Positions 16,312-64,000 of a stretch of DNA of 64,000 nucleotides are shown here, one piece after another. The translations under genes were made by a program, and so were the position numbers. A model generated the notes under the pieces. It saw nothing but the letters and a program-made list of their open reading frames with translations, searched no databases and was not told the DNA's origin. Origin of the DNA: Chrysemys picta bellii (lineage: Eukaryota); contig NC_088807.1 of assembly GCF_011386835.1 (NCBI RefSeq), positions 19,096,001-19,160,000 of the forward strand. Reading direction: 5' to 3'. Each line of letters opens with the position of its first letter. Position 1 is the first letter of the stretch.

Positions 16312-16429
16312 GTAAGTATTGGGGGGCGCCCCCCCCTCCACCGGGGACTGGGGGAGCACAAGGGGCCAGGAGTGGGGAACCCCCGGCTCTGGCTCCAGCC
16401 CCCCTGCTCTGACCACTGGCCCCCACGCC

Positions 16430-16765
16430 CCTGCCAGAGCCGGGGAGAGAACCCAGGAGTCCTGACTCCCAGTCCCCCTCCTCTAACCACTAGCCCCCCA
16501 CTACCCTGCCAGAGCCAGGGAGAGAACCCAGGAGTCCTGACTCCCAGCCCCCCTCCTCTAACCACTAGCCCCCCACTACCCTGCCAGAGCCAGGGAGAGA
16601 ACCCAGGAGTCCTGACTCCCAGCCCCCCTCCTCTAACCACTAGCCCCCCACTACCCTGCCAGAGCCAGGGAGAGAACCCAGGAGTCCTGACTCCCAGCCC
16701 CCCTCCTCTAACCACTAGCCCCCCACTCCCCTGCTAGAGCCGGGGAGAGAACCCAGGAGTCCTGC
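16430..16765 (+). repeat. ~62-bp tandem repeat (GAGAACCCAGGAGTCCTG family) in FIZ1 intron 1
   Basis: Five to six head-to-tail copies. Confidence 0.9.
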
Positions 16766-17135
16766 CCTGCCCCGGCCAGTCACAGGAGGTTCCCGCTGGC
16801 TGGTGGCCCGAGCGGTTATAAATAGAGGGGCAGAGCCAGGGCTTTGGAATTAATCTGCTTCCTCGGCCCGGGGCGCCAAGAACCAGGCAATGGGGATCAG
16901 GAGATTAACGAGGCCTGCGGGTTTATAACGGTCTGCAGGTAATTACCAGTCCCCTGAGCCAGGGATCGAGGCCAGCGCCCCCTAGAGGGGACAAGCCCCG
17001 TGCCCCATTCCCTGCCCCCCTGAGCCAGCCAGTCCCTGCCCTGGGGCGGGATCAGGGCCAGGGCCCCCTAGAGGGAGCATCACTGACTCGGCTCCTGTTT
17101 GCGATTCCCAGAGGCGTCGGTGGGACTCGGCGGGG

Positions 17136-36422: not shown

Positions 36423-37255
36423 ACACCTGCTGGAGGAGATGGGCCCTGCTCTGTGTGTGTGTGTGTGTGTCCCTGCTGCCCCTTGCTGGAGAGGCTGAGC
36501 CCTGCAGTGTGTGTGTGTGTGTCCATCCAGCCCTGCCGTGTGTGTGTGTGTGTGTCCCTGCTGCCCCTTGCTGGAGAGGCTGAGCCCTGCAGTGTGTGTG
36601 TGTGTGTCCATCCAGCCCTGCCGTGTGTTTGTGTGTGTGTGTGTCGCTCCCTGCTGGAAATGGGCCCTGCACTGTGTGTGTGTGTGTCCATCCAGCTCTG
36701 CCGTGTGTGTGTGTGTGTGTGTGGTGTGTGTCGCGTCGCCCCCTGCTGGAAATGGGCCCTGCACTGCGTGTGTGTGTGTCCCTCCTGCCCCCTGCTGGAG
36801 AGGCTGGGCCCTGCACAGTGTGTGTGTGTGTGTGTCCCTGTCGCCCCCTGCTGGAGTGACTGGGCCCTCCTCTGTGTGTGTGTGTGTCCCTGCTGCCCCC
36901 TGCTGGAGGAGATGTGCCCTGCACTGTGTGTGTGTCCCTGTCGCCCCCTGCTGGAGATGGGCCCTGCACTGTGTGTGTGTGTGTCCATCCAGCTCTGCCG
37001 TGTGTGTGTGTGTGTGTGTGTGTCGCCCCCTGCTGGAAATGGGCCCTGCACTGCGTGTGTGTGTGTCCCTCCTGCCCCCTGCTGGAGAGGCTGGGCCCCT
37101 GCACTGTGTGTGTGTGTGTGTGTCCCTGTCGCCCCCTGCTGGAGTGACTGGGCCCTCCTCTGTGTGTGTGTGTGTCCCTGCTGCCCCCTGCTGGAGGAGA
37201 TGTGCCCTGCACTGTGTGTGTGTCCCTGTCGCCCCCTGCTGGAGATGGGCCCTGC

Positions 37256-37308
<53 letters not shown>

Positions 37309-37420
37309 GCTGCCCCCTGCTGGAGGAGATGTGCCCTGCTCTGTATGTGTATGTCCCTGCTGCCCCCTGCTGGAGAGGCAGGACCCTGCACTGTGTGTGT
37401 GTCTGCGTGTGTGTGAGCCA
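36065..37420. repeat. Composite (GT)n plus gccccctgctgga minisatellite
   Basis: Directly visible; source of the long Cys/Val and His/Thr spurious ORFs. Confidence 0.92.
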
Positions 37421-39509
37421 TGCCCCTGGCATGCGTCCCATGACACACCCCCCACCCCCACAGTAGTGGCCAGGCCGCCCAGTGATTCATGAGGCTGCTC
37501 CAGCCTCAGCCCACGAGCCGGGTTGAATCTCCGCGTTGGGATCCCAGCTGCGTTCCCCATGGCTGCCGGCCCCCCCCCCGGGGCGCCTGCGCTGGCTGCT
37601 GGAGCAGAGCCAACGCTCAGCGCCAGGCCCCATGCCAGTGGATTCGGATCACAACCCCGGCCTTCGCTTTAATGCCTTTTTGAGATTTGCTCCGATTTCC
37701 ACATTCACAGCGGCGCAGCCCTAGGGTGGCGGAGGATGGGAGGGGGGCAATCGGTCAATTAGTCACTAATTATCCCATGAGGGCAGACACCGGGAGCCCG
37801 AGCGTTAACACTTGCTCCCCCTTACAACCGAACGCCCGCAGGAAGAGACCCAGCGAAAGTCCGATCACACACGAGCAGCGTTTTCCTGACTTGGCCTCTC
37901 GGTGATTTCCAGGGTAATGGCCATCGTGTTCGAAATGGACGCTTCAAACCCGACTCCTTCCCACCCTGCCTGAGATACCTGCGGACAGGCCCACGCTGGG
38001 AGGGGTCTGAGAAACTGGCGAACGGGGCTGAAATCAGTGAGACGGACCAGCACAGAGAACGGCGCGTGAGAAGGAAAAATCAGTTGCCCGGGGGGAACAG
38101 CTGGCTAGGCAGGGGTGCCGCAAAACAGCACACGGGGATGGGGGGGGTCTAGTGGATCACAAACCGGATCACTTGTGCCTTGTGAACGGGAGGGTCGGGG
38201 GTGAGCCATGGGAGGGGCTTGTTTGCCCGGGTACGGGGGGGGAAGCGCCGTTTCGGGCACCGCACTTTCAGAGAGATGCGGCCACATTTGGAGAGAGCCC
38301 GCAGGAGTGGAGCTGAATGGGTGAGTGGGAGGATTAGACAACCCAGACAATGGGGAAAAGGTGGAAGAACTGGGGCCTGGTCCATCCAGAGACGAGCTGG
38401 CTGAGGGGGGCCAATAGCAGCCCACGGAGGCATACCAGGCTGGTCTAAGGAGGCTGGGGATCAGTCGCTAAGTTTCCGGCAACGGAGATCCCGGTAAGCG
38501 ATCAGGGGATTCAGCTATGGACCCGGCTCCCTGGGATAGCTGCGGGCTCCCCATCCACGGGCGTTTGCAAGACCACATTGCACAAACCCTGCCAGGGATG
38601 ATCTAGGTGGATTTGGTCCTGCCTCGGCGCAGGAGGCTGGGCCAAACACCCCCTCGAGGCCCCTTCCAGCCTCACGTGGCCGGGTGTCGAGGCTTTTCAA
38701 TTTACAGCAACCAGAATCTAGGCCATTCCCACGCCTCTCACTGTGGTGCCTTCCTCTCCTGCCGTCCGCAATGTGAAGACACATCTGTCAAAAACTGCCT
38801 GTTCCCTCTGCCTCACCTGGGGGTGGAGTGGCTTGTTCTGGTAGGACAGGTGTGGAACATGCAGGTTGCTCTGTGTCGATGGTGAAACTCGCCTGGCTCT
38901 TGGAGCCGGAGGCAGGGAGGCTGGAAGGTCGGGGGAACCAGCCTCAGATGAAGCCCTGTCCTGCCAATCCAAGTGGTGTCTTTAGTATAGAGCATCCCAC
39001 CTGGGCCTGGCCTGCAGCTACAGGTTCTTTTAGAGACACTGCGACCAGGCCAGGGAGACAAGGGCAAAACGCCCGAACTTGATCCATGGTTCTGTGGGAA
39101 GTCGAGGGGCAGACGACGGCCTCAGTTGCTTGTGGGGAGACATATGAAGATCAGATGCTCAGGAGGTTTCCCGTAGAGAAAGGTCACTAATCCAGGGCTA
39201 AACGTCACCGTAGCCACCTGGGAATAAAGGACACTGGCCGTACTGCCAGGGTGGGGGAATATCTCGTGGGAAGCCGGGACCCTGTAGAAACCTGGGAGGG
39301 CATGGCGGGTATTCGCCATGCGCTCCCTGTGCGAGGCTGGGGCACATCAACAGGGGAATCTTAAGACGGAGCAGAGGCCGTTTGACCTCTGGATTTGGTG
39401 CGACCCGCTGCTGGGAGCCTGTGTCTAGCTCTGGTGCATGCCATTCAGGAAGGACGGTAATCAATCGGAGAGGGGCCAGAGAAGTGCCAGGAGATCGGTT
39501 CAAGGGTGA

Positions 39510-39790
39510 GAAAACCCACCTGAGAGGGAGAGACTCCGGGACTCAGTCTATTTAGCTTGATGAAGAGGTTCAGGGCTGACTTGATCCCAGTCTATCCTCT
39601 ATCCGTGGGGAACAGCTATTTCATCACGGGCTCTTCAGTCTAACCAAAGAAGGTCAAACACCATCCAACGGCGGGAAGTTGAAGCGAGACACATTCAGCC
39701 TGGAAATGAGGCCTATGTTTGGAACGGGTCAGAGTAACAAACCGGGGGACAATTCACCACGGGCGTCACTGCCCATTTTAAAATCAAGAT
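39510..39790 (+). mobile_element. Old CR1 fragment
   Basis: CR1 ORF2 3' signature (gtctatttagcttgatgaagagg..., gaagttgaagcgagacacattcagcctggaaatgagg). Confidence 0.6.
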
Positions 39791-41589
39791 TGGCTGGTTT
39801 TCGAACAGATCTGCTCTGTTATTGCGGGGCCATTCTCTGGCCGGTGCTAGACAGGAGGGCAGACTAGGGTCTGGCTTTAGAATTGATGAACTTACACATG
39901 GGGCAAACCTGGATTTTTTTGGTTCTGTTTTAGAGTTTTCAGCAAAATCGGACATCTGGGGGCATTTTCGTTTCGGGCCAGTGGCAAGCGGGATTTCAAA
40001 TACACTTTTGCCTTTAAAAAGATCATATAAAATGGGTGGAAGTTCCTCGCAGCAAAGCAGCATGAATCCCCTGCCCCTAAAAATCAAACCGTTTGACTTT
40101 TCCCAAATCGTTTTTCCCCTGACCGAAAAAACTGTGTCAAAATCGCTGGCAAGTTGGTGCAAGGTCTCAATCACTCCACATCTGGAGCCACCCCCAGCAA
40201 ACGATTTCATCTGGAAAGTTTTTGCCCAGCTGCTGTTCCATGCCCAGGTCCGTGGCAAGGCTGGAATCCAGCCAACGAGGGACAGTGGGATGAATAACTG
40301 ATGATGGCTCATCCTCTGCTGGCGCCCAAAGCTACTGACTGATGCATAATGTTGCTGCCCGATTTGGCTGGTGGTGGTCCGTCGATGTCGTCCGACGTTG
40401 GAGGAGAAACTGGCTGGTAGGACGTCCTGTGTCATCTGGGGTGACCAAGAATGGATACAAAGGCCTAGTTCCCTGAATGCACTAGGATCAAGCAGCAGCA
40501 GGCAGGTTTCTTGTTCAGAAATCCAGGCCTGCGTTCAGACAGTCCTGTGCCCCAAACAGCTTTGTCTCACTGCTTTCTTCCAGGGCCGCTGCATCTCTGG
40601 CTAAGCCACCCCATGATATGTGTAAAGAGATGGGGTCAGTTATCCTCATGATGAAGGTGAGGCCTAGAGCAATCAACATGACTTGGAGCTGCCTAGATGC
40701 AGAGGCAGGAGTAGAAACCAAATGTCCTCTATCCTAGTTCCAGCCTCCTGGGTAAACCCCCCTTCACCTCCCTGGGTTAGCTTTTTGTTGTTTTTGCTCA
40801 GGCCTTGCCTTTTGGCTCCATGCCTTGGGTGGTGGCTTCTGTCGTTTCCCACTCTCATTACATACCAGCACCTTAATTGATCCTTCTAGGTAATCCAACA
40901 GATTACACCCATCACTTTAAAGTGATTCATGGTAACCATTAAGGCCCTCCCTCATAACATCACGTGTGCACAAGTGCATGTATTTTAATGTTGCATTATA
41001 AACAGAGAGATGTTCTGAATGATTATCGGTGTTATTGTAACGTTGGAGAGGCCGGGCAGAGCTCCCTGCTCCCAACTTGTGAAAAGCCGTCTTACGCAAT
41101 TCCAACGCAACTGCAGCTATCAGAGTAAACAAACTTGACTCTATTTACTGCTGCTCTAGCCCTGGGGCGGGGTGGGGGGAGAGTTGAAAACGTGGCGTCC
41201 CCAGTGACCTGCGTCGCCAGGGGAAATCACAGCACCTGGGTTCGTTTCTTCTCCTCCGATTGTTCACATTATTATTATGTGTCTTAGATGCTCTTGTTGC
41301 TACCCTAATGGAGAGTGGGACCCCACTGCTGCCCAGGGGCCGAGAGCGGGACCCCGTCGGGCTGGGCGCTGCCCCCACGCAGGGAGACTGTCCTGCCCTG
41401 TGCAGCTCGCAGGCTGAAAGATTGTAAAGATGGGGAAACTGAGGTCCCGCAAGACGAGTCACCCAGCTGGCCACACGCAGAGCCAGGAGCCAAGTGTCCA
41501 CAGCTGCACCCAAACCTGATGCGTGGGGCGGCCATGCCCATCGCCTGCCATGTGTCAGTACTGCCATCCACCCAGCCTCGACTCCTCTA

Positions 41590-43500
41590 CGCAGCCCCAT
41601 GGGAACCCCTCCTCCTCACACCCCCTCCATCCCCCCTCCTGTAGCCAGCCCCACGGGAACCCCTCCTCCCTCACACCCCCTCCATCCCCCCTCCTCTATC
41701 CAGCCCCACGGGAACCCCTCCTCCCTCACACCCCCTCCATCCCCCCTCCTCTATCCAGCCCCACGGGAACCCCTCCTCCCTCACACCCCCTCCATCCCCC
41801 CTCCTCTATCCAGCCCCACGGGAACCCCTCCTCCCTCACACCCCCTCCATCCCCCCTCCTCTATCCAGCCCCACGGGAACCCCTCCTCCCTCACACCCCC
41901 TCCATCCCCCCTCCTCTATCCAGCCCCACGGGAACCCCTCCTCCCTCACACCCCCTCCATCCCCCGTCCTGTAGCCAGCCCCACGGAACCCCTCCTCCCT
42001 CACACCCCCTCATCCCCCCTCCTCTATCCAGCCCCACGGGAACCCCTCCTCCCTCACACACCCCCTCCTGTAGCCAGCCCCACGGGAACCCCTCCTCCCT
42101 CACACCCCCTCCATCTTCCCTCCTGTAGCCAGCCCCACGGGAACCCCTCCTCCCCCACACTCCCTCCATCCCCCCTCCTGTAGCCAGCCCCACGGGAACC
42201 CCTCCTCCCCCACACCCCCTCCATCTTCTCTCCTGTAGCCAGCCCCACGGGAACCCCTCCTCCCTCACACCCTCTCCATCCCCCCTCCTGTAGCCAGCCC
42301 CACGGGAACCCCTCCTCCCTCACACCCCCTCCATCCCCCCTCCTGTAGCCAGCCCCACGGGAACCCCTCCACCCCCACACCCCCTCCATCTTCCCTCCTG
42401 TAGCCAGCCCCACGGGAACCCCTCCTCCCTCACACCCCCTCCATCTTCCCTCCTGTAGCCAGCCCCACGGGAACCCCTCCTCCCTCACACCCTCTCCATC
42501 CTCCCTCCTGTAGCCAGCCCCATGGGAATACCTCCTCCCTCACACCCCCTCCATCCTCCCTCCTGTAGCCAGCCCCACAGGAACTCCTCCACCCCCACAC
42601 CCGCTCCATCCCCCCTCCTGTACCCAGCCCCACGGGAACCCCTCCTCCCTCACACCCCCTCCATCCCCCCTCCTGTAGCCAGCCCCACGGGAACCCCTCC
42701 ACCCCCACACCCTCTCCATCTTCCCTCCTGTAGCCAGCCCCACGGGAACCCCTCCTCCCTCACACCCCCTCCATCTTCCCTCCTGTAGCCAGCCCCACGG
42801 GAACCCCTCCTCCCTTACACCCCCTCCATCCCCCCTCCTCTATCCAGTCCCATGGGAACCCCTCCTCCCTCACACCCTCTCCATCCTCCCTCCTGTAGCC
42901 AGCCCCATGGAACCCCTCCTCCCTCACACCCCCTCATCCCCCCTCCTGTAGCCAGCCCCACGGGAATACCTCCTCCCTCACACCCCCTCCATCCTCCCTC
43001 CTGTAGCCAGCCCCACAGGAACTCCTCCACCCCCACACCCGCTCCATCCCCCCTCCTGTACCCAGCCCCACGGGAACCCCTCCTCCCTTACACCCCCTCC
43101 ATCCTCCCTCCTGTACCCAGCTCCACAGGAACCCCTCCACCCCCACACCTCCTCCATCCCCCCTCCTGTACCCAGCCCCACGGGAACCCCTCCTCCCTTA
43201 CACCCCCTCCATCCCCCCTCCTGTACCCAGCCCCACGGGAACCCCTCCACCCCCACACCCGCTCCATCCTCCATGCTCTACCTAGTCCCATGGGAACCTC
43301 TTCACCTCCACAGCCTCTCCATCTCCCCAACTCCTTTACCCAGCCCCACAGGAAGCCCTCCACCCCCACACTCCCGCCATCCCCCACTCCTCTACCCAGC
43401 CCCACGGGAACCCCTCCTCCCTCACACCCCCTCCATCCCCCCTCCTCTACCCAGCCCCACGGGAACCCCTCCACCCCCACACTCCTCTACCCTCCCACAC
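41590..43500. repeat. ~43-bp C-rich minisatellite, about 40 copies
   Basis: Unit cccacgggaacccctcctccctcacaccccctccatccccctcctgtagccagc. Confidence 0.95.
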
Positions 43501-44574
43501 CCCTTCTCTCCATCCCACCCCCAGTGTGCATTTCGTCCCCCCGCCGCACTCCCCTAGCTGGCTCTGCTCCACACCCATTGGCTGGCACCGGGGCTGCTCC
43601 AGGCAAGGGAAGAACCTGACCCTGGAGCTGCTCGGAGCGAAGGACGGAGCCAGCCCAGAGCCGTTGGGGGCCCCTCGGGCCAGACTTCCCAGCCGGACTG
43701 TGCACACAGGGGGAGCCCCCACCCACTCTCTTACCTGCCCTAGGGCGGGAGGCAGTACCTGGCTGGCTCAGCGGCTGTGGGAGCAATGCAGGGATCCCCT
43801 GGGTCCAGGGCTGGGAACCGCCTACACAGCGAGTGAGAGAGGCTGGCTCAGAGCAGCCCATGGCAGGGGAACGAGAAACACCCCCCGCCATGGGACAGAG
43901 CCACCCACCCCTGGGCTGGATCTGGAGTCACTCCTGATTGCACTGGGGGCAGGGAAGGCCGGGTTCTGATCTCAGCTCCCCGGGATCAATCCGGAGTCAC
44001 CCCGATCTCAGCTCCCGCAGGGTCAATCCAGAGTCACCGCTGACTGCATTGGGGGCAGGGCCGGGTTCTGATCTCAGCTCCCTAGGGTCAATCTCACCCC
44101 CACATAAAGATCAAAACGAACGATGCTGCGGATCTCCGAGCCCGTCTCCCGATTGCTGGTTTTGCTAACAATTCCTGCCCTCCCGCACCCGTCACCTGCT
44201 GCCAGGCCTGGCCCAGAGCCAGGGACGCTGGGAGGAAAACAAGCCTCCTTAAGGAGCTTGCTCAGCTGCCAGCAGCCCTGTGATTAGACTAATAAGTGGG
44301 TGAGCGGCATCTCCCACCTGGATGCCTGGGTTCCACCAGCGCACCTGTTAGAGAGAAATCCGCGGCGCTGCCAATTGGCAGGGTTTGGGGTGTTTTGCAT
44401 AGAGCAGCTGGAGTTATGGGAAAACACAGGAGAAAGTCAGTTCCCGTTGAACCCGCCGGGACTTTTGTGGGGTCCCAAGGCCAAATTCTGGCCACAAAGA
44501 CACAAAAAGCTAAAGGTCATGAAAATGGCATGAATGGGTCAGAGAGAGTCACTGACACAGCTGTTTGGATAACT

Positions 44575-44880
44575 CCCAGCCCCCTGCTCTAACCACTCAC
44601 CCCCACTCCCCTCCCAGAGCCAGGGAGAGAACCCAGGAGTCCTGGCTCCCAGCCCCCCGCTCTAAACACCAGACCCCACTCCCCTCCCAGAGCCAGGGAG
44701 AGAACCCAGGAGTCCTGGCTCCCAGCCCCCCGCTCTAAACACCAGACCCCACTCCCCTCCCAGAGCCAGGGAGAGAACCCAGGAGTCCTGGCTCCCAGCC
44801 CCCCGCTCTAAACACCAGACCCCACTCCCCTCCCAGAGCCAGGGAGAGAACCCAGGAGTCCTGGCTCCCAGCCCCTCTCG
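44575..44880 (+). repeat. ~62-bp tandem repeat (GAGAACCCAGGAGTCCTG family)
   Basis: About 5 head-to-tail copies. Confidence 0.9.
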
Positions 44881-45424
44881 CCAGGTAATGACAGGATACT
44901 CACTGCACAGATGCTAATGACAAAGCCCCAGACACTGTGAGCAGCTCCTGCTTCCCTGACAGATGCCTGGCCTCTGCCCCACAGGGGCCTGAGCTCGCCA
45001 GGGCGTGAATCACCCAGGGCAGCGTTCCTGACAGCTGCAGGGGCAGAGCTGGGGAGGGGCTGGGAGCCAGGACTCCTGGGTTCCATCCCTGTGTCTCAAA
45101 GGGGAGGGGGGTCTAGTGGTTAGAGCAGGCGAGCAGGAGCTGGGAGCCAGGATGCCTGGGTTTTATCCCCGAGTGGTTGGATGGGGGGCTAGGAGCCAGG
45201 ACTCCTGGGTTCTCTCCTGGCTCTGGGAGGGGAGGGGAGTCTAGTGGTTAGAGCAGGGGGGGGCTGGGAGCCAGGACTCCTGGGATCTCTCCTGGCTCTG
45301 GGAGGGGAGGGGGGTCTAGTGGTTAGAGCAGGGGGAATGGGAGCCGGTTCTCTCCCCAACTCTGGCAGGGAAAAAGCCATGAGCCCTGCCCCCTTTCTCC
45401 CATCTCTCTCCCCCTCCCCAAGAT

Positions 45425-45611
45425 CCAGCTTCTGGCGGAAGCTTGGCTCCACTCCGTGCTTCACACGTGACCGCCGCCATCTTTGTCCCTGGCACATCCC
45501 CCGCCCCCGGCTGGGCCCGAATAGGGCAGACTCAGATCAGCCGCCATCTTCGATCCAGAGCGAGGCTCAGGGGCCAGAATGTTGCAGCCCAGCCCCCATC
45601 CAGCGCTGCAG
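45425..45611 (+). promoter_or_regulatory. CpG-island promoter and first exon of the transposase-derived gene
   Basis: GCGGAAG (ETS) 45435-45441, CACGTG 45464-45469, two CCGCCATCTT (YY1) at 45474 and 45541, donor CAG|GTACCA at 45611/45612. Confidence 0.6.
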
Positions 45612-48600
45612 GTACCAGCCCTGGCGGTGCCCCTCACTCCCGACCCGCAGCCCCCCCCGGTGCCCCTCACTCCCGACCTACAGCCCCCCCCCAGCCTGGC
45701 CGGTCCCCACCCCCGGGACCCGCAGCCCCCCCCCCGGTGCCCCTTACTCCCGACCTGCAGCCCTCCCCCCCCCGTATTCCCCACTCCCTACCTGCAGCCC
45801 CCCCCCCCGGCCCAGCCGGTCCCCGCCCGGTGCCCCTCACTCCCGATCTACAGCCCCCCCCCCCCAGCCCGGCCGGTCCCCACCCCTGGGACCCGCAGCC
45901 CCCCACTCCCGAACCACAGCCCGACCAGCCCCCCTGTTGCCCCTTACTTCTGACCCACAGCCCCCCGTGCTCCCCACTCCCGACCTGCAGCCTCCCCCAG
46001 TGCTCCTCACTCCCAACCTGCAACCCCCCCCGCCCGGCCGATCCCCCCCCGACCCGCAGCCCCCCCCGGCCCGGCCAGTCGCCCCTCGGTGCCCCTTACT
46101 CCCGACCCGCAGCCCCCCCCAGCCCGACTGCTGCCCCTCACTCCCGACCTGCAGTCGCCTCTCCGCGCTGGGCAAGAAAATGGACCTGGTAGCGGAACCC
46201 AGGAGTCCTGGGTACAAGGGGTCGGGTAGGACTGGCCTATTACCTGACTGTCCCGCCCCCTGAGCATCTCACAGTGTTTGTACCCTCCCGACACCCCCTG
46301 TGTGAGAGGCCGGGGCTCGTTATCCCCTCCTATAGAGAGGGAAACCGAGGCACGGAGACCCAGAGGACGCGCCTTTCCCAGGGCCTGTGCCAGGGCCTGC
46401 AATAGAAGTTGGGCTCCTCAGGCCCTGGACCAGCACCCACTAATGCCCACCCAGAGAGCCTGAAGAATTGGCTCCATGAGCTGGCAGCAGTAGTAGGTTG
46501 TTATCCTGTTCCAGCTGGGATGGCTGTGAAGGGAAGGGTGGGGGGAGGTAGGAGGAAATGTGGGATTGTGGGTAAATTCAGGGCTGAAGGAATGGGGAAG
46601 TGCAGCTCCCTCGAATATCAGGGTTGGAAGAGACCTCAGGATGTTCTAGTCCAACCCCCTGTTCAAAGCAGGACCAATCCCCAACTAAATCATCCCAGCC
46701 AGGGCTTTGTCAAGCTGGGCCTTAAAAACCGCTACGGATGGAGATTTCACCACCTCCCTAGGGAACCCATTCCAGTGCTTCGCCACCCTCCTATTAGGAA
46801 ATAGTGTTTCCTAATATCCAACCTGGACCTCCCCCACTGCAATGTCAGAGCATTGCTCCTTTTCTGTCATCTGCCCCCACTGAGAACAGCCGAGCTCCAT
46901 CCTCTTTGGAATCCCCCTTCAGGTAGTTGAAGGCTGCTATCAAATTCCCCCTCATTCTTCTCTTCTGTAGACTAAACAATCCCAGTTCCCTCAGCCTCTC
47001 CTCGTAAGTCATGTGCTCCAGCCCCCTGATCATTTTCGTTGCCCTCTGCCAGACTCTCTCCAATTTGTCCACATCCTTTCTGTAGTGGGGGGCCCAAAAC
47101 TGGATGCAATACTCCAGATGCGGCCTCACTAGTGACAAACAGAGGGGAATAATCACTTCCCTCGATCTGCTGGCAATGCCCCTACTTATACAGCCCAATA
47201 TGCCATTGGCCTTCTTCACAACAAGGGCACACTGCTGACTCATATCCAGCTTCTTGTCCACTGTAATCCCCAGGTCCTTTTCTGCAGAACAGCCGCTTAG
47301 CCATTCGGACCCCAGCCTGTAGCGGTGCCTGGGATTCTTCCATCCTAAGTGCAGGACTCTGCACTCGTCCTTGTTGAACCTTATCAGATTTCTTTTGGCC
47401 CAATCCTCCAATTTGTCTAGGTCCCTCTGTATCCGATCCCTACCCTCCTGCGTATCTACCACTCCTCCCAACTTAGTGTCATCCGCGAACTTGCTGATGG
47501 TGCAATTCATCCCATCCTCCAGATCATTAATAAAGATGTGAACAAAACCAGGACCGACCCTTGGGGCACTCCGCTTGATACCGGCTGCCAACTAGACATG
47601 GAGCCGTTGATCACTACCCGTTGAGCCCGACGATCTAGCCAGCTTTCTATCCACCTTATAGTCCATTCATCCAGCCCATACTTCTTTAACTTGCTGGCAA
47701 GAATACTGTGGGAGACCGTATCAAAAGCTTTGTTAAAGTCAAGATATATCACGTCCACTGCTTTCCCCATATCCACAGAGCCAGTTATCTCGTCATAGAA
47801 GGCAATCAGGGCATGACTTGCCCTTAGTGAATCTATCCCCCACCGCCCCCAATTTATCCATCCCCGCCCAAGGAGTATCATGAACCCACCCACGTTGTTC
47901 CCCGGGGTTCTTTCAACCCAAAGCTCTTGGTAATTTTTACTCAGTGCGAGGTGGTGTCAAGAAATAAATCAGGGGAGACACGGCCATCCGACCGATAGAT
48001 GGCTGGCACACACAGGACAACACTTAAACTTAAAGCTAAACGTTACTTAATCTCAAGCACTCACACACGTCCGCAACAGGTTAGTAAAACACCCCCAACC
48101 CTTGATAATTACCAAAGCTGAGTGTCGCTCTCGAATGGCACAACGGCAGGCTTCGTCAGCCAAATCTTCCGTCTGCCAGTGGGGACCCCTGAGATGCGTC
48201 CCGAGGGAGCGTCCCTGAAGAAAGCCTCCCGAACAGTCCAACTAACGCAAACTTCCTCCCCTTATTTATACATTAGCACTAGGATGACATGTCACTTAAA
48301 GAAAACTTGCTAGGCAAGTGATTTTTAAGAGTCAATCAAGAGGTTTCCTTCTGAGCATTAATTTAACCAGATGTGGGGGTTTTTAGAGGGCACATGCCTT
48401 CATGCCCTGATAGACAGATTCCTGTTTTTCTAAAATACAAGTCTCAGCAATTTCAACGTTCTTAGCAGGAAGGGCGGAGGGTGAAGCCGCCCTTTCCATG
48501 GTACCCAAAACCCCCTCCCCTCCTGCCTTGGTTAAGCTAAGCCTGCTGACTTGGCTACTGTTAGCAATAAGCCATAGTGATTCGGGCACTTTACTGGTTT

Positions 48601-50905
48601 GCCAAGATCTCCCCGAACGACGTCTCCGGCGCCCACTATGGGCCGGAGCAGGAAGTGCAGAACGAGGCGCCTGGCAGAGCTCGGAGAGGCGCCCGGAGGA
48701 ACCTGCTGGAGCCCCAAAGAAGGAGAATCCGCCCGGGCTGCCGGCTGCCAGGAGAGACGTCTGAGGACAAAGGTACCGTCCTGCAGAGGGGCAGGACTTT
48801 TGGGTTCTCCCCCTGGCTCAGGGAGGGGAGTGGGGTCTAGTGGTTAGAGCAGGGGGAGGAGGCGCTGGGAGCCAGGACTCCTGGGTTCTCTCCCCCAGTG
48901 ACCCCGTGCCCTGTCCCTGCAGCGGAAGCCCCGTCTGGCATCGGGGACCTGGTTCTGGCAGCTGAACTGATGGAGATGGCCGGGGTGTCCCCCTGCTATG
49001 CCCAGCACCGGGGCGGGACCCAGCCGGCCGTGCAGCACGACCATGGGGCCTACGGCGTCCCCCAGGAGCCGGCTGCGCTGCACCGCATGGTGCGGGAGCT
49101 GCAGGAGACGGTGCATCGGCAGAACCAGCTGCTGCAGAGCTCGCAGGAGGCCCTGGCCGCCAGCCAGGAGCGCTGCCAGGAGCTGCAGGTGAGGGGCGAG
49201 GCACTAGGGGGCGCAGTGCTGCAAGGCGAGGGCATCATTCCCATACCCCACCCCAGAGTCAGCCGCATCCCAGCGCCGGGCAAGGGATCCCCGGATCCCC
49301 AGCACCCCCCCCCCAGATGGGCAGGGCGAGGGGTCCCCGAATCCCCAGCCCCTGCGCCCCACCCCAGATGGGCTGGGCGAGGGGTCCCTGGATACCCAGC
49401 CCCTGCGCCCCACTCCAGATGGGCTGGGCGAGGGGGCCCCGGATCCCCAGCCCCTGCGCCCCACTCCAGATGGGCTGGGCGAGGGGGCCCCGGATCCCCA
49501 GCCCCTGCGCCCCACCCCAGATGGGCTGGGCGAGGGGCCCCCGGATCCCCAGCCGCGTCTCTGGCTCTGCGTGCCGTAGGAGAGGTCGGAGAGCGAGTGC
49601 TGGGCGCTGGCGTCGGAGCTGGGCCAGCGGATCGCGGCGCTGGAGGCGGAGAACCGGAACCTGCGGTGCGAGCGGGACCAGCTGGAGAGCCAGACGCAGG
49701 GGCTGCGGGAGGAGCTGGAGCGGAGCCGCAGCACGGTGCTGCACATCAGCCAGAAGCTGAAGGAGCAGGGGGGCCGGGCCGGGCCGGGCCGGTTCTGCCT
49801 GGCCAGCGTCCGGGACGACGGCAAGTGGCTGCGGTTCTACACCGGCTTCGGCAGCGCCCAGCGCCTGGCCGCGTTCCTGGCCTTCCTGACGGAGGGGGAG
49901 CCGCAGCGGGGGGCCGAGCCGGGCCCCCCCAGCGCCCTGGGCCCCGAGGACCAGCTCTTCCTGGTGCTGGTGCGGCTGCGGCTGGGGCTGCTCCTGCAGG
50001 ATCTGGCCTTTCGCTTCCACCTTTCCGAGGCCACCGTCTCCCGCTACTGGCTCGGCTGGACCCAGCTCATGGAGACCCGGCTGGCCCAGGTGAGCCCCCA
50101 CCCTGGGGCCGGCGCCCCCTAGGGGGACAGGCCCCGGGCCCCATTCCCCACCCCCTGAGCCAGCCAGTCCCTGTCCTGGGGCCGGATGGGGCTGGCGCCC
50201 CCTAGAGGGGAGCAGGGGAGAATCTGTGTGCAGAACAGATTGGAGGGACTGGTCCACCCCTCACATGGGGAGGGGGCATTGCTTGGAGGGGTGCCCCCCC
50301 CAGGGGCAGGGGTTGCCTGGAGGGACTGGTCAGCCCCCCCATATGGGGATCACATGGGAAGGGGGTGTGACCTGGAGGGACAGTCCCCCACCTGGGAAGG
50401 GGGAGTGGCCTGGAGCCCCCCCACCTCCCAGCAGGGCCTGACTCTCCCGCCCCCTCTCCCGCAGGTGCCGGTGCGGTGCAGCCCGCGCTACGTGGAGCGG
50501 TTCGAGCCGCAGCGGGCGGCGCGGGTTGGGGGCGTCCCGCTGGTGGTGCTGGACTGCGCCCAGCTCTGCTTCGAGGGCCGGGGCCGGCAGCTCTACGCCC
50601 TGCAGGGCTGCGCCCTGGCCGCCCCCAGCGGCTTCCTGGCCTTCTGCTGCAGCGCCGCCTTGCGGGGCAGGGAAGGGGGGCCGGGGCTGCCCCCCTTCCT
50701 GCGGGACGGCCCCGTGGCCCTCAGCGCCCAGCAGGGGGAGGCCAGCCGGCAGGTGCTCAGCCTGGCCAGCCTGGCCGACAAGGCCCTGCGCTTCCGCTTC
50801 CTGCGGGGGGTCCAGCCCCCTGCCATGGAGGGCCAGGTGGGGCGGGCCTGGGCCATCTGCTGCTACCTGGCCTGCCTGCTGCATGAGCCCATGGGGCTGG
50901 CCTAG
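45579..50905 (+). CDS. Uncharacterised transposase-derived protein (coiled coil + HTH_Tnp_4 + degenerate DDE_Tnp_4), ~463-471 aa; exons 45579-45611 (or 46180-46188), 48607-48772, 48923-49188, 49580-50089, 50465-50905
   Basis: GT-AG introns join into one stop-free frame (phases 0,1,0,0); motifs FCLASVRDD...[43 protein letters not shown]...E, P.G...F, LPPFL. The last three exons are solid; the start exon is uncertain. Confidence 0.78.
46612..47815 (-). mobile_element. 5'-truncated CR1 LINE (RT region plus 3' end) in the intron of the transposase-derived gene
   Basis: [19 protein letters not shown]...SGVPQGSVL / FINDLEDG...[11 protein letters not shown]...RPHLEYC.QFWAP; one frameshift near 47590. 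Confidence 0.93.
47955..48604 (-). mobile_element. Probable solo LTR (~650 bp)
   Basis: Ends TGTCAA...TTGCCA; minus-strand TATAAATA ~48265; no TSD found. Confidence 0.4.
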
Positions 50906-51704
50906 GCAGGGGGGTCTGCCTCTGCCCCCAGGGGGAGGTGGGCCTTGGGGATTCCCCGCCTCCCCCCATAGCTGGCAGGTGTGGGGCTGGTATAGGGGCC
51001 CTGGATTCCCCCCTGCCAGTGACTGGGGGGAAGGGAGATCTGGGGGTCATCCAAGGGGGCTCACTGGGGGTCCTGCTCTCAGCTGTAGCTGATCTATGTG
51101 GCAGCCTGGATAGGGCATTTGGCCCCGCAATGCCCCCTCTTGGGGGGGTCCACACTGGGAGGGGGCTATGGGTGGGGGAGGGGCCGAGCCCTCCCCCTGA
51201 TTCCAGCCCACGAAGGCAGGAGGATGGGATAGTATCGGGGCGCTGGAGGCAGCTGGATCCCTCTCATTCCCCCTTCCACACAGGGGCGGGTAAAGCGAGG
51301 CACAGAAAGACCATGCTCAGCCCAGGGTGGAGGCAGGGATAGAACCCAGGAGTCCTGACTCCCAGGACCCCACCCCCCCCTTGCTCTAACCACTAGTCCA
51401 GATTCCCCTCCTAGAGTCAGGGAGAGAAATGGTGTCAAGTGGTTAGAGCACACTGGGGCTGGGAGCCAGGACTCCCGGGTTCTGTCCTCAGCTTTGCTGC
51501 TTCTGTTTCCCACTTTTTCTCCCCCTCCTGCCCAGCTGGTCCTGTCCCTGGGCTCAAGCCATTTGGGGGTGCCTGGAGAGGGGAGGCAATTCCCCACCTT
51601 TGCCAAATGGGGGGGGGGCTGCAGGGCCACTGGCCCCAACCCTGCTGCTCTATGTCTGGGTGGGTTCGTGGATTATTTGTAACCTGTCCCTGCTTTTGGT
51701 TGGA

Positions 51705-51710
51705 AATAAA
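51705..51710 (+). terminator. Putative poly(A) signal of the transposase-derived gene
   Basis: AATAAA about 800 nt after the TAG at 50903-50905, followed by T-rich sequence. Confidence 0.55.
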
Positions 51711-52595
51711 CCATTTGTTCCTGGGAACGGCGGTGAGGAGACATCCGTGAGCAGGGCCCCCCCCTCCAATAAGCCACCTGTATTGCAACCTATGCCCTCC
51801 CTGGGGGGACAGCCCTGCCCCACAGCCATGGGGAGCAGGAGAAAGCCCTGGGCCCCTCCCTTGAGAGAGCGGGATTGTGGGTTCTCTCTCTCCCAGGCTC
51901 TGGGAGGGGAGTGGGGTCTAGTGGTTAGAGCATGTCCTGGCCCCAGCTCTCCCCAGGGGGAAGTTGGCTGGAGGGACAGGGCACTGGCCACTTGCAGCAT
52001 AAGTGAGGCACCTGCTGGGCTCTTCTCTGCCCCACTGACTCCAGCAGAGCCCTGGGGCCAAACAGATGGGGGGGAGGGGGGGTGTGAGAGAGAGCACACA
52101 CGCGCGACACAGCCCACAGCCCCCCGGGAGGAGCCTGAGCCCCATTGGAAAGGCAGCTGCCCCCCAAACCTAGCCCTGCCCCCCTCACAGCTGTTGTCTG
52201 TAGAAGAGGGACAGGGGCAAATACAGACACTATTGCAACCTGGGGCGGCCCAGGGGCTACTTATCCAGGGACCCCTCCCCTGGTGCTGAGACGCAGCCCC
52301 AAGGCAGTGGAGCTGGTTATCCAGGGATTCCTCATCTGCTGAGATGGGGCAGGGCCCAGGGGCTGGGTATATGGGGACCCCTCCCCTGGCGCTGAGACAT
52401 GGCCCCTCTGGGGCAAGGGGGGGCTGGGTATATGGGGGTCCCCCCGGGACATGGCCCCTCTGGAATGGGGTGTGGGGGCTGGGTGTAACGGGGACCCCTC
52501 GCCCTGCACTGGGACATGGCCCCTGTGGGTTAGTGGGGGGAAGGGCACTGCCCCGCAAGCAAACACAGCAGACGCCAGCCCACGGTTCTGACCCA

Positions 52596-52601
52596 TTTAT
52601 T
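52596..52601 (-). terminator. RPL18 poly(A) signal
   Basis: TTTATT on + strand, 28 nt beyond the stop codon. Confidence 0.85.
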
Positions 52602-52629
52602 GGACACAGGCAGGTGCGGGCCGGCGCCC

Positions 52630-57898
<5,269 letters not shown>

Positions 57899-61856: not shown

Positions 61857-63179
61857 GTAAGGCCGTCGCTGTGCCATCTGCCCTGCTCCCTTCTCGGAAC
61901 TGGGGTGAGAACCCAGGAGTCCTGGCTCCCAGCCCCCACCCCTATCGCCCTCACCCGCTAGACCGCACTTTCAGAGCTAGAAATAGAACCCAGGAGTCCT
62001 GGCTCCCAGCAGCCCCCACCTCTAACCACTAGACCCCACTCCCCTCCCAGAGCAGGGGATGGAACCCAGGAGTCCTGGCTCCCAGAACCCGAGACTAAGT
62101 TCTGTCCGGTTCGACCCACCGTAACAATAATAAAACAGATGCTGTTGTGGAGACCCAGAGATGGTTCCACCTGGAGGTGGGACGTCAGCCCCCCTCAGAC
62201 GTTTCACTGCCCCGGCCCTGAATGTGTGCCCGGGACAGGGGGTTGCAGCCAGCGATGGCTCCGTGATCTCTGCTGCTGGAGAGCCCCAAAACCAGACCCG
62301 GTGAAGAGGGGACCCCCTGCCCCCTCTAGCTTCGCCTGCCATGCTGAACCGCCCTTGGTGGGTTTTACAGGCACAGGATGGGGGCCCGGATGCCTGGGTT
62401 CTCTCCCCGGTCCTGGGAGAGGGGTCCAGCCCCTAGAGTATGGGGCAGCTGGGAGGCAGGCTATCTGGATTGTGTGTGCCCGCAGGTGGGGCTGGGGAAC
62501 CAGTACCCGGGTGGTGCCTGGCATGCTTGGGGCCCGGATGGCAACGCCTCAGTTCAGGGAACTTGCAGGCCGGGTGCGGCCCCGTCCTTTCCTTGTCCTG
62601 GGCTGGGCTCCTTTGTCTTCCACAGCGTGGCCAAAGGTCAATGGATTGTCTTGAAGGTGGGGCTGTCGGATTCCTTGTCCTCCATCCCCTAGGCTTCCCT
62701 TGGGGGCCCCATCTCTCCCCCCCACACACTTGGTCTAACCCCTCCCACATCAGGGCCTCTCAAGGAGCCTCCCAAACCCTGGGGGGGGGGCAGGATCCCT
62801 CCTGGAGGGACTGGGAGTTGCCTTTAGCACTGGCTCCCCACCTCTCTGCACCTGCTGAGGGATGGGGGGTGCTGAAGGCGGGGCTGGCTGGGGGGCAGAT
62901 GCCATGGTGGCATGGGGGTTGGCTCCAGGGGGTGCCTAGGGACAGGGTGGGGGGGCTCTGGCAGGGGTGTGCATGGGTGCAGTGGAGGTGCATGAGTGGA
63001 GCACGCTGGGCAGAGGGTGTATTGGGGGGGGGGGTATCAGCGCTGCCTCTCTGGGCTGGGGACCCTGCAGAACCTGCCCCACTATCAGCCCTGGGTGTAA
63101 AGTGCACCCGTCTCCGCCTGGTACGATAACCGGGGAACTTTTGACTTGGAGTGAGGAGCATCCACCCCCCTCCAACCAC

Positions 63180-63645
63180 TTGATTCCATGCCCCTCCCAG
63201 AGCCAGGGTTAGAACCCAGGAGTCCTGGCTCCCGCTCTAACCACTAGACCCTGCTACCCTCCCAGAGCCAGGGTTAGAACCCAGGAGTCCTGGCTCCCGC
63301 TCTAACCACTAGACCCTGCTACCCTCCCAGAGCCAGGGTTAGAACCCAGGAGTCCTGGCTCCCGCTCTAACCACTAGACCCTGCTCCCCTCCCAGAGCTG
63401 GGATAGAACCCAGGAGTCCTGGTTCCCTGCTGTAACCACTATACCCCACTCCCCTCCCAGAGCCAGGGTTAGAACCCAGGAGTCCTGGCTCCCAGCCCCC
63501 CCCTCCTCCCGCTCTAACCACTAGACCCTGCTCCCCTCCCAGAGCTGGGGATAGAACCCAGGAGTCCTGGTTCCCTGCTGTAACCACTATACCCCACTCC
63601 CCTCCCAGAGCCAGGGAGAGAACCCAAGAGTCCTGGCTCCCAGGC
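63180..63645 (+). repeat. ~57-62 bp tandem repeat (GAACCCAGGAGTCCTG family) in SPHK2 intron
   Basis: About 8 copies. Confidence 0.9.
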
Positions 63646-64000
63646 CCCAGTGGGCAGGCACTAGGAAATGGATGAGTGTTTGCGTGCCCCAGCATTCCTT
63701 CTGCAGTGTGTGGTGGTGGTGCTGGGTTAATCTTTCCTCCCCGCACATCCTCCGGGCTCACTTATCTACTTCCCTCACCCTGTCGGGCAGGGTGCTCTCC
63801 CCTGGCAGTCTGTGCTGGGCCCTAGGGGGGCGCTATGCAGCCTGGAGTGGGGTGGGGGGCTCAGTAAAGGGCCCTCTTCCTATGCCTCCATGCCAGGCGA
63901 GGAGTCCATGTATAACCAGCCCCCACGTCCCACCGTCCTGCCACTGTCACGCTGGCTCAGAAGCTCAGGGCGGATCAGTCTAATATTGTCCTGGGTTCCT

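Follow-up and report, generated by a model that had tools for sequence, protein, structure and literature searches.

Here we report that a 64,000-nucleotide stretch of the Chrysemys picta bellii genome (contig NC_088807.1, positions 19,096,001 to 19,160,000 of the forward strand; hereafter the window) carries, at 45579-51710, a gene annotated as LOC112060730. We read it as a genuine single-copy host gene that descends from an ISL2EU-type transposase, has been inherited vertically and now probably acts as a non-catalytic nuclear scaffold binding DNA or chromatin (probability about 0.82). The domestication and the ISL2EU origin of the gene are close to certain; its mode of action as a non-catalytic nuclear DNA- or chromatin-binding scaffold is proposed with moderate confidence, by analogy with other domesticated transposases. 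An original prediction made from the sequence had regarded the gene as a domesticated transposase, and the conserved synteny, the spliced transcripts, a ratio of nonsynonymous to synonymous substitution rates (dN/dS) below 1, the absence of terminal inverted repeats (TIRs) and a separate clade in the phylogenetic tree all speak in favour of that reading.

Gene structure and transcripts

The gene had been predicted from four exons, and we found that these (48607-48772, 48923-49188, 49580-50089 and 50465-50905) do join into one stop-free frame of 1383 nt ending in TAG, with AG before each exon and GT after the three internal donors. Taken alone, this four-exon frame has its first in-frame ATG no earlier than its second exon (48923-49188). 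The start codon lies in a mini-exon at 45579-45611, which runs from ATG to CAG before the GT donor in phase 0 and amends the four-exon model. The resulting five coding exons encode a protein of 471 residues that is 100% identical, over its full length, to the RefSeq protein P0200, ‘uncharacterized protein LOC112060730’, of Chrysemys picta bellii. The features of the locus are as follows.

45425..45578, + strand: putative promoter and 5′ untranslated region (UTR), from a motif scan; promoter function presumed
45579..45611, + strand: start exon of 11 codons with donor GT at 45612; it forms the N-terminus of the RefSeq protein, and Mauremys and Chelonia have the same 11-codon first exon
48607..48772, + strand: exon 2 of 5, with a THAP relic (48622-48654) and a basic patch resembling, and putatively serving as, a nuclear localisation signal (spliced contigs, tblastn, alignment)
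48923..49188, + strand: exon 3 of 5, with a 13-residue conserved motif (48940-48978), D106-H107...P113 (49039-49062) and a helix from 49069 (contigs, conservation, AlphaFold2)
49580..50089, + strand: exon 4 of 5, with the ~100-residue helix to 49768, the KWLRFYTGF block and HTH_Tnp_4 (49934-50086) (Pfam, AlphaFold2, contigs)
50465..50905, + strand: exon 5 of 5, a compacted DDE/RNase H-like remnant with D355 (50552-50554), the site of the missing second-Asp block (50651-50686, 12 residues), D430 (50777-50779), an invariant C-terminus of 14 residues and the stop TAG (50903-50905) (hhalign, Foldseek, dN/dS)
50906..51725, + strand: 3′ UTR with AATAAA at 51705-51710 (contigs over 50589-51378 and 51078-51480); the poly(A) position itself is putative
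55001..56094, − strand: RPL18 exons, the downstream neighbour, outside the gene and tail-to-tail with it, used as the synteny anchor (Pfam Ribosomal_L18, E = 1e-7 to 7e-18; collinear with the Chelonia locus, which carries an annotated RPL18)

Splicing, which the prediction had proposed from GT-AG sites, is borne out by RNA contigs from four runs of four studies and two turtle species (runs X1, X5 and X6 of organism A, from three studies, and run X12 of organism B) that remove three introns at the predicted sites. Aligned to 45550-51549, these contigs show junctions at 48770/48921, 49186/49578 and 50086/50462, matching the three introns within an alignment ambiguity of 2-3 nt. They extend 33-92 letters 5′ of exon 48607-48772, and the up to 92 upstream letters would fit a transcript start at or before about 45520. 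Runs X1-X5 together hold 0.70 of the sampled words of 49580-50905, a stretch of which the two exons make up 0.72. Some contigs keep intron 2 or part of intron 3 and look like unspliced precursor. As predicted, the codons are rich in G or C at third positions (GC3 0.93, against a GC content of 0.56-0.75 in the introns), and the AATAAA at 51705 is the sole signal of its kind in 50906-52000.

Most of intron 3 is filled by a 51-nt tandem repeat (49306-49554, 4.9 copies, 94% matches), and several Gopherus RefSeq isoforms translate the equivalent kept intron as an insert rich in Pro and Gly. An alternative first coding exon of 15 residues in Gopherus matches window DNA from an ATG near 46181.

Orthologues, synteny and vertical descent

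Next, we searched for orthologues exhaustively with phmmer, using exon 49580-50089, and by a word-indexed search with the gecko protein; both gave the same picture. Each species that matched contributed a single ‘uncharacterized LOC’: the matches came from many squamates, from turtles, anurans, a lungfish, the coelacanth, sharks and rays, and equally from gar, bowfin, sturgeon, paddlefish, bichirs and, among early-branching teleosts, from eels, bonefish, arowana, herring and characins. All of these proteins carry HTH_Tnp_4, those of fishes carry THAP as well, and none carries DDE_Tnp_4. Among predicted proteomes no mammal, bird or crocodilian protein was found, though the manta ray protein scores E = 1e-90.

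Single-copy orthologues adjoining RPL18, which would be expected of a host gene, were found in three turtles, a gecko, a frog and a manta ray, with the gar as an exception. The gene orders are:

Chelonia: SULT2B1-like (−), gene (+), RPL18 (−), SPHK2-like (+)
Gopherus: SULT2B1-like (−), gene (+), RPL18 (−), SPHK2-like (+)
Mauremys: SULT2B1-like (−), gene (+), RPL18 (−)
Eublepharis (gecko): gene, RPL18
Nanorana (frog): SULT, gene, RPL18
Mobula birostris (manta ray): gene, then ~600 bp on RPL18 on the opposite strand

The window is collinear with the turtle loci and carries the RPL18 exons. Furthermore, the intron positions after residues 66, 155 and 325 are common to turtle, gecko, frog and gar. 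The gar orthologue (Lepisosteus oculatus L004:10001-23645) has two tandem THAP domains (Pfam, two stretches) and an extra intron, and has Lectin_C and SPRY genes as its neighbours; the gene may have been relocated in ray-finned fishes.

A maximum-likelihood tree, obtained by a quick search with support from the Shimodaira-Hasegawa-like approximate likelihood ratio test only, placed 45 vertebrate proteins in one clade and 18 transposases in the other, with support of 100 each, and so separates the host proteins from transposases as a domesticated gene would require. Within the vertebrate clade, ray-finned fishes, cartilaginous fishes, frogs, squamates and turtles were each recovered, in a sensible order. 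This topology follows the species tree and therefore indicates that a single gene has been passed on vertically from a time before cartilaginous and bony vertebrates diverged. The gene is thus older than reptiles by far: turtles share it with sharks and rays, and it has at least the age of jawed vertebrates.

Purifying selection

For four turtle genera, rough Nei-Gojobori (NG86) estimates of dN/dS over the whole gene were 0.31-0.49, with every bootstrap interval below 1 (upper bounds at most 0.88), as expected if the gene is maintained. By region, the N-terminal part gave 0.33-0.51 and the C-terminal DDE remnant 0.04-0.21; the values for the coiled coil and the helix-turn-helix (HTH) are noisy because few changes are available. 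Accordingly, the “dead” C-terminal domain is the most constrained part of the protein. Over 41 species, 53 columns are invariant, including D430, K431, C356, C458, C462 and H465, and the HTH and the final 50 residues hold many of them. Conservation is poor in the N-terminal third.

In Chelonia mydas (L001:15496-15943, corresponding to window 50640-50700) a G run holds a 7-nt insert, compared with 6 nt in Gopherus and Mauremys, which gives a +1 frameshift. The annotated Chelonia protein consequently ends in an out-of-frame tail, and the Natator protein has the same length of 431 residues. After the frameshift the Chelonia DNA is still about 96% identical, and in the old frame its TAG has kept its position; either the assembly has an error in the homopolymer or sea turtles have recently undergone a truncation.

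Origin from an ISL2EU-type transposase

To which transposases the gene is related was addressed by profile comparison. Aligned with hhalign, the 41 orthologues match 18 transposases of the type THAP, HTH_Tnp_4 and DDE_Tnp_4 with a probability of 100 and E = 2.4e-55, over 443 columns that run from the THAP finger to the C-terminal helix. The next-best sequence matches after the orthologues are likewise proteins with THAP, HTH_Tnp_4 and DDE_Tnp_4 (E about 1e-23, 25-30% identity), often with a short coiled coil, and orthologues and transposases share both LEAEN, in the coiled coil, and the RFYTGF block. A single open reading frame (ORF) combining THAP, HTH and DDE is the architecture of ISL2EU transposases, while classical Harbinger elements use a separate Myb-like protein (PMC4482050, PMC9179366). 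Together with the THAP finger kept by fish orthologues, the nearest relatives therefore uphold the proposed assignment to ISL2EU rather than to classical Harbinger or HARBI1.

The order THAP, HTH and DDE was recovered from Pfam matches to THAP and HTH_Tnp_4 in ray, gar and herring and, for the DDE part, from hhalign; the turtle has only a relic of the THAP finger. Ray, gar, herring and coelacanth proteins score for the THAP finger, which is absent from the lungfish and tetrapod proteins examined. The turtle relic comprises 11 residues of the CxxHF stretch (48622-48654), the last THAP zinc-ligand stretch, aligned with VCSAHFLPEQE of the coelacanth. A tblastn search with fish THAP domains found no THAP exon in window 37000-49000 beyond this 11-residue relic, and the turtle protein has no THAP domain.

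An HTH domain and a decayed catalytic core

The prediction had assigned to the protein the layout HTH_Tnp_4 followed by DDE_Tnp_4. The first half of this claim stood: HTH_Tnp_4 was matched at E = 1.9e-16 on exon 49580-50089 and at E = 4e-16 on the whole protein (residues 274-324), with no other significant domain. The second did not, in that Pfam does not recognise DDE_Tnp_4 and only a remnant is left: no match to PF13359 was found even at E <= 1, on the last exon alone or in five whole orthologues, and the remnant is visible only by profile-profile and fold comparison.

We therefore turned to structure prediction. An AlphaFold2 model built on 41 orthologues has a mean predicted local distance difference test (pLDDT) score of 73.9. 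From the N-terminus to residue 106 the chain is predicted to be disordered (pLDDT < 50) except for a short helix at 74-84; there follow a single helix of ~100 residues (116-218), a confident helical HTH module (229-323) and a C-terminal alpha/beta domain (328-464). Over the long helix and the HTH, the mean pLDDT of 10-residue blocks is mostly 81-95. In AlphaFold/Swiss-Prot, a Foldseek search paired residues ~212-461 with IS5-family transposases, with HARBI1 from six vertebrates and with Arabidopsis ALP1 and ALP1-like, each at a probability of 1.00 and with E values between 6e-7 and 2e-5. In the PDB, no Foldseek match reached E <= 1e-3 (the ISCth4 transposase came closest, at E = 0.13), and a profile search of PDB sequences gave coiled-coil noise only. 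ESM Atlas features for exon 4 of the four-exon model were uninformative, their best scores of 0.88 being to unnamed clusters.

Compared with the transposases, a segment of ~50 residues (GSISD...MADRGF), which holds the GSxSD and ADRGF motifs and the second catalytic Asp, is deleted or replaced: by 12 unrelated residues in turtles, and by longer, partly acidic, lineage-specific stretches in frogs and fishes. An invariant Asp (D430) stands where the transposases have the catalytic Glu, the first catalytic position (residue 355) is Asp or Glu, and turtles have an additional deletion of 12 residues within the DDE remnant. An intact D-D-E triad with a recognisable DDE_Tnp_4 domain is thus not present. 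Since PF13359 is not matched, the second-Asp block is absent and the Glu has become Asp, the gene is a descendant of ISL2EU transposases and not a working member of the group.

The orthologues also share an insertion with a 12-residue motif, ...HDHGxY.vP.DP and a longer helix, for which the transposase profile has no counterpart. A homodimer prediction with two copies of residues 105-330 scored 0.54, the best control reaching 0.43; we use it as evidence neither way.

Proposed mode of action and alternative explanations

We propose that the ancestor of the gene was the transposase of an ISL2EU-type DNA transposon, with a THAP zinc finger, a coiled coil, HTH_Tnp_4 and DDE, which was immobilised and gained its introns before the split of cartilaginous and bony vertebrates, and which has been inherited vertically since, mostly tail-to-tail with RPL18. 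The protein would no longer cut DNA and is predicted to lack transposase activity. A nuclear location is likely because a conserved basic patch precedes the first motif. Multimerisation would proceed through the long helix and binding to DNA or chromatin through the HTH, to which the THAP finger of fishes may add sequence-specific DNA binding. The constrained C-terminal remnant and the two newly fixed N-terminal motifs might then recruit partners, as has been proposed for HARBI1 and reported for ALP1 in plants.

Several findings weigh against this reading. The absence of the gene from mammals, birds and crocodilians is known from predicted proteomes only, and the gar copy is not beside RPL18 and has other neighbours, so that the RPL18 synteny is not universal. 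The dN/dS is only moderately low in the N-terminal and coiled-coil parts; the NG86 estimates are rough at a GC3 of 0.93, and comparisons with frog and gar, being saturated or distorted by shared extreme GC3, were left unused. The annotated sea-turtle C-terminus is frameshifted and, if this is real, would be dispensable in that lineage. Two of the three catalytic positions are still acidic and one of them is invariant, so some residual metal-dependent activity is conceivable. Finally, the role as a scaffold or regulator is drawn by analogy.

The strongest competing proposal for its function is a repressor of ISL2EU transposons encoded by the host, in which a dead transposase would poison or compete with active ones and be kept only where such transposons are still met. 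The KP repressor acts in this way against P elements. Such a role would suit a protein that has lost the catalytic block and kept the coiled coil, with the same LEAEN motif as the transposases, the HTH and, in fishes, the THAP finger. Part of its attraction is that the gene appears to be missing from lineages without ISL2EU elements: it is present in fishes, frogs, squamates and turtles and was not found in mammals or birds, and a Repbase-based review reports no trace of ISL2EU in the human genome, either as a repeat or as a domesticated gene (PMC5753468). However, the HTH and the C-terminus are nearly invariant from sharks and rays to turtles, where an arms race would predict faster change, and the THAP finger, which would recognise transposon ends, is lost in the tetrapod and lungfish proteins examined. 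We consider the repressor unlikely.

Far less probable is a still-active nuclease or recombinase with a rearranged active site, like THAP9. The acidic residue kept at the first position (D/E355), the invariant D430 at the Glu position and the nearby invariant Cys and His residues would fit such an enzyme, but the segment with GSxSD and the second Asp (ADRGF) is deleted or replaced, turtles have lost a further 12 residues, Pfam DDE_Tnp_4 is not matched at E <= 1 and no TIRs are present. Least credible is that the locus is a decaying transposon fossil or transcribed pseudogene whose open frame is a by-product of GC-rich DNA. Such DNA does yield long chance ORFs in the window, and the N-terminal third of the protein is poorly conserved and predicted to be disordered. 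Orthology refutes this explanation, with the open spliced frame having syntenic orthologues in cartilaginous and bony vertebrates, as do the dN/dS well below 1, the 53 invariant columns and the conserved intron positions. A non-catalytic host protein of ISL2EU descent is thus the reading that we prefer.

Promoter region, repeats and neighbouring sequence

A promoter with a CpG island and YY1 and ETS sites had been predicted upstream of the gene. YY1-type and ETS-like motifs are present, whereas a CpG island is weak at most (GC 0.65 and an observed-to-expected CpG ratio of 0.51 over 45350-45650). The YY1-type 11-mer GCCGCCATCTT occurs at 45473 and 45540 and nowhere else in the 64-kb window; other putative promoter motifs from the motif scan are an E-box at 45464, an ETS-like CGGAAG at 45436 and a GC box at 45501.

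The predicted lack of TIRs holds: in an inverted-repeat search of 44000-53000, all inverted repeats were copies of a dispersed ~75-nt unit resembling a short interspersed nuclear element (SINE), and neither TIRs nor a target-site duplication (TSD) flank the coding unit, as is typical of domesticated genes. This SINE-like unit (...GGGTCTAGTGGTTAGAGCAGGGG...GGGAGCCAGGACTCCTGGGTTC...) is arrayed in tandem 5′ of the gene, within intron 2 and within the 3′ UTR (44580-45335, 48783-48895, 51345-51500 and 51887-51932) and is also found at 16390-16770 and 63165-63650; the cover by RNA contigs over these spots is very deep. The first intron holds a fragment resembling a long interspersed nuclear element (LINE) at 46620-47800 (−), within which the ORF at 46845-47591 (−) has a weak RVT_1 match (E = 0.0095); its very high RNA contig depth comes from many diverged copies.

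Other tandem repeats were noted around the gene. C-rich repeats with periods of 33-37, 56 and 170 nt lie at 45625-46154, directly after the donor of the start exon. A long array with a period of ~55 nt occupies 41580-43520, between the SULT2B1-like gene and LOC112060730, and shows as numerous blastn matches, offset from one another, to Gopherus L005:6328-7530. Close to where RPL18 has its 5′ end, at 56969-57500 (+), overlapping ORFs of 52 residues repeat an identical Pro-rich translation at 53-nt steps and so mark another tandem repeat. In Mauremys mutica (L006:1-12752), the annotated range of the SULT2B1-like gene (−) reaches into the first intron of the LOC112060730 orthologue; in Mauremys this divergent pair may have overlapping 5′ ends or a common promoter region.

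Novelty and significance

The gene had been put forward as undescribed, and a full-text literature search found no paper that describes it. RefSeq already annotates it as a LOC, and the only names that RefSeq and UniProt give the proteins are ‘uncharacterised’ and ‘Transposase Helix-turn-helix domain-containing’. Domesticated transposases are well known, having given vertebrates RAG1, HARBI1, THAP9 and the PGBD genes, and with HARBI1 as a precedent from the sister group the present case is not a new principle. Because catalogues of such genes mostly start from the human gene set, those lost in mammals and birds are easily missed.

With only slightly better than even confidence, we lean towards a wider reading, in which this would be the first described vertebrate host gene from an ISL2EU transposase: a second Harbinger-like domestication, independent of HARBI1 and of jawed-vertebrate age, with parts lost stepwise, the gene itself lost in mammals and birds, and the product serving as a non-catalytic chromatin or DNA scaffold or as an ISL2EU repressor. 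The parts lost may have been the THAP finger, in those tetrapod and lungfish proteins that were examined, along with a further compaction of the dead core in turtles. If so, the ISL2EU group would join the transposon sources of vertebrate genes, and the gene would provide a dated case of domestication, at least of jawed-vertebrate age, with stepwise domain loss that took THAP first and the catalytic core afterwards. It would also offer a conserved, unstudied putative DNA-binding protein that can be tested in Xenopus, gar and turtle. Its absence from two lineages with little DNA-transposon activity makes a link between a domesticated transposase and transposon control testable, and the gene is of interest for both transposon domestication and vertebrate gene loss.

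Comparison with known systems

The closest known system is that of the ISL2EU (IS4EU) transposases of the PHIS/Harbinger-like superfamily, with which the gene shares the order of THAP, coiled coil, RFYTGF block before the HTH, HTH_Tnp_4, RNase H-like domain and C-terminal helix. Unlike these elements, the host gene is single copy, has introns and a fixed synteny, has no TIRs or TSD, and has no Pfam DDE_Tnp_4 domain or second-Asp block; in addition it has extra conserved motifs (the 12-residue motif and HDHGxY..P) and a longer coiled coil. Of the hallmarks of an ISL2EU element, namely a second ORF of YqaJ type, TIRs and a 2-bp TSD, none was seen. For YqaJ this refers to the annotation beside the gene in the loci compared, where the neighbours are SULT2B1-like and RPL18, and not to a direct search.

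The THAP1-THAP11 proteins resemble the fish orthologues in their N-terminal THAP finger, a short Asp-His motif and a coiled coil. In contrast to them, the tetrapod and lungfish proteins examined have no THAP finger, and the turtle protein lacks the C2CH finger. No human THAP protein is known to combine HTH_Tnp_4 with a Harbinger-type remnant. THAP proteins typically carry near the coiled coil an HCF-1-binding motif, canonically [DE]-H-x-Y (PMC13631171). We considered this motif for the present gene and rejected it on its spacing: after the invariant D106-H107, the Y or L stands at +4 (DHGAY) instead of +3, and the long helix comes next. As DH-x-x-Y/L is not canonical, HCF-1 binding is only a guess, to be taken as a lead.

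HARBI1, like the present gene, is an ancient domesticated transposase of the PIF/Harbinger superfamily, and its HTH and RNase H-like domains match in fold with a probability of 1.00. Its conservation is reported to extend to all jawed vertebrates (PMC5753468). Only 13-18% of residues are identical in the fold alignment, and HARBI1 has neither THAP ancestry nor a long coiled coil and is named a ‘putative nuclease’; it is retained in mammals, where a gene of the LOC112060730 type was not found. Xenopus laevis has both HARBI1 (Q5U538) and LOC108696677, and the two are therefore separate genes. The turtle gene is thus no HARBI1 orthologue, and the prediction that it differs from HARBI1 agrees with a relationship at the level of the fold only. 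A further fold match with a probability of 1.00 is to ALP1 and ALP1-like of Arabidopsis, which are, as cited in PMC9179366 (refs 54 and 56), transposase-derived components of chromatin complexes. ALP1 represents an independent domestication in plants, from Harbinger rather than from ISL2EU.

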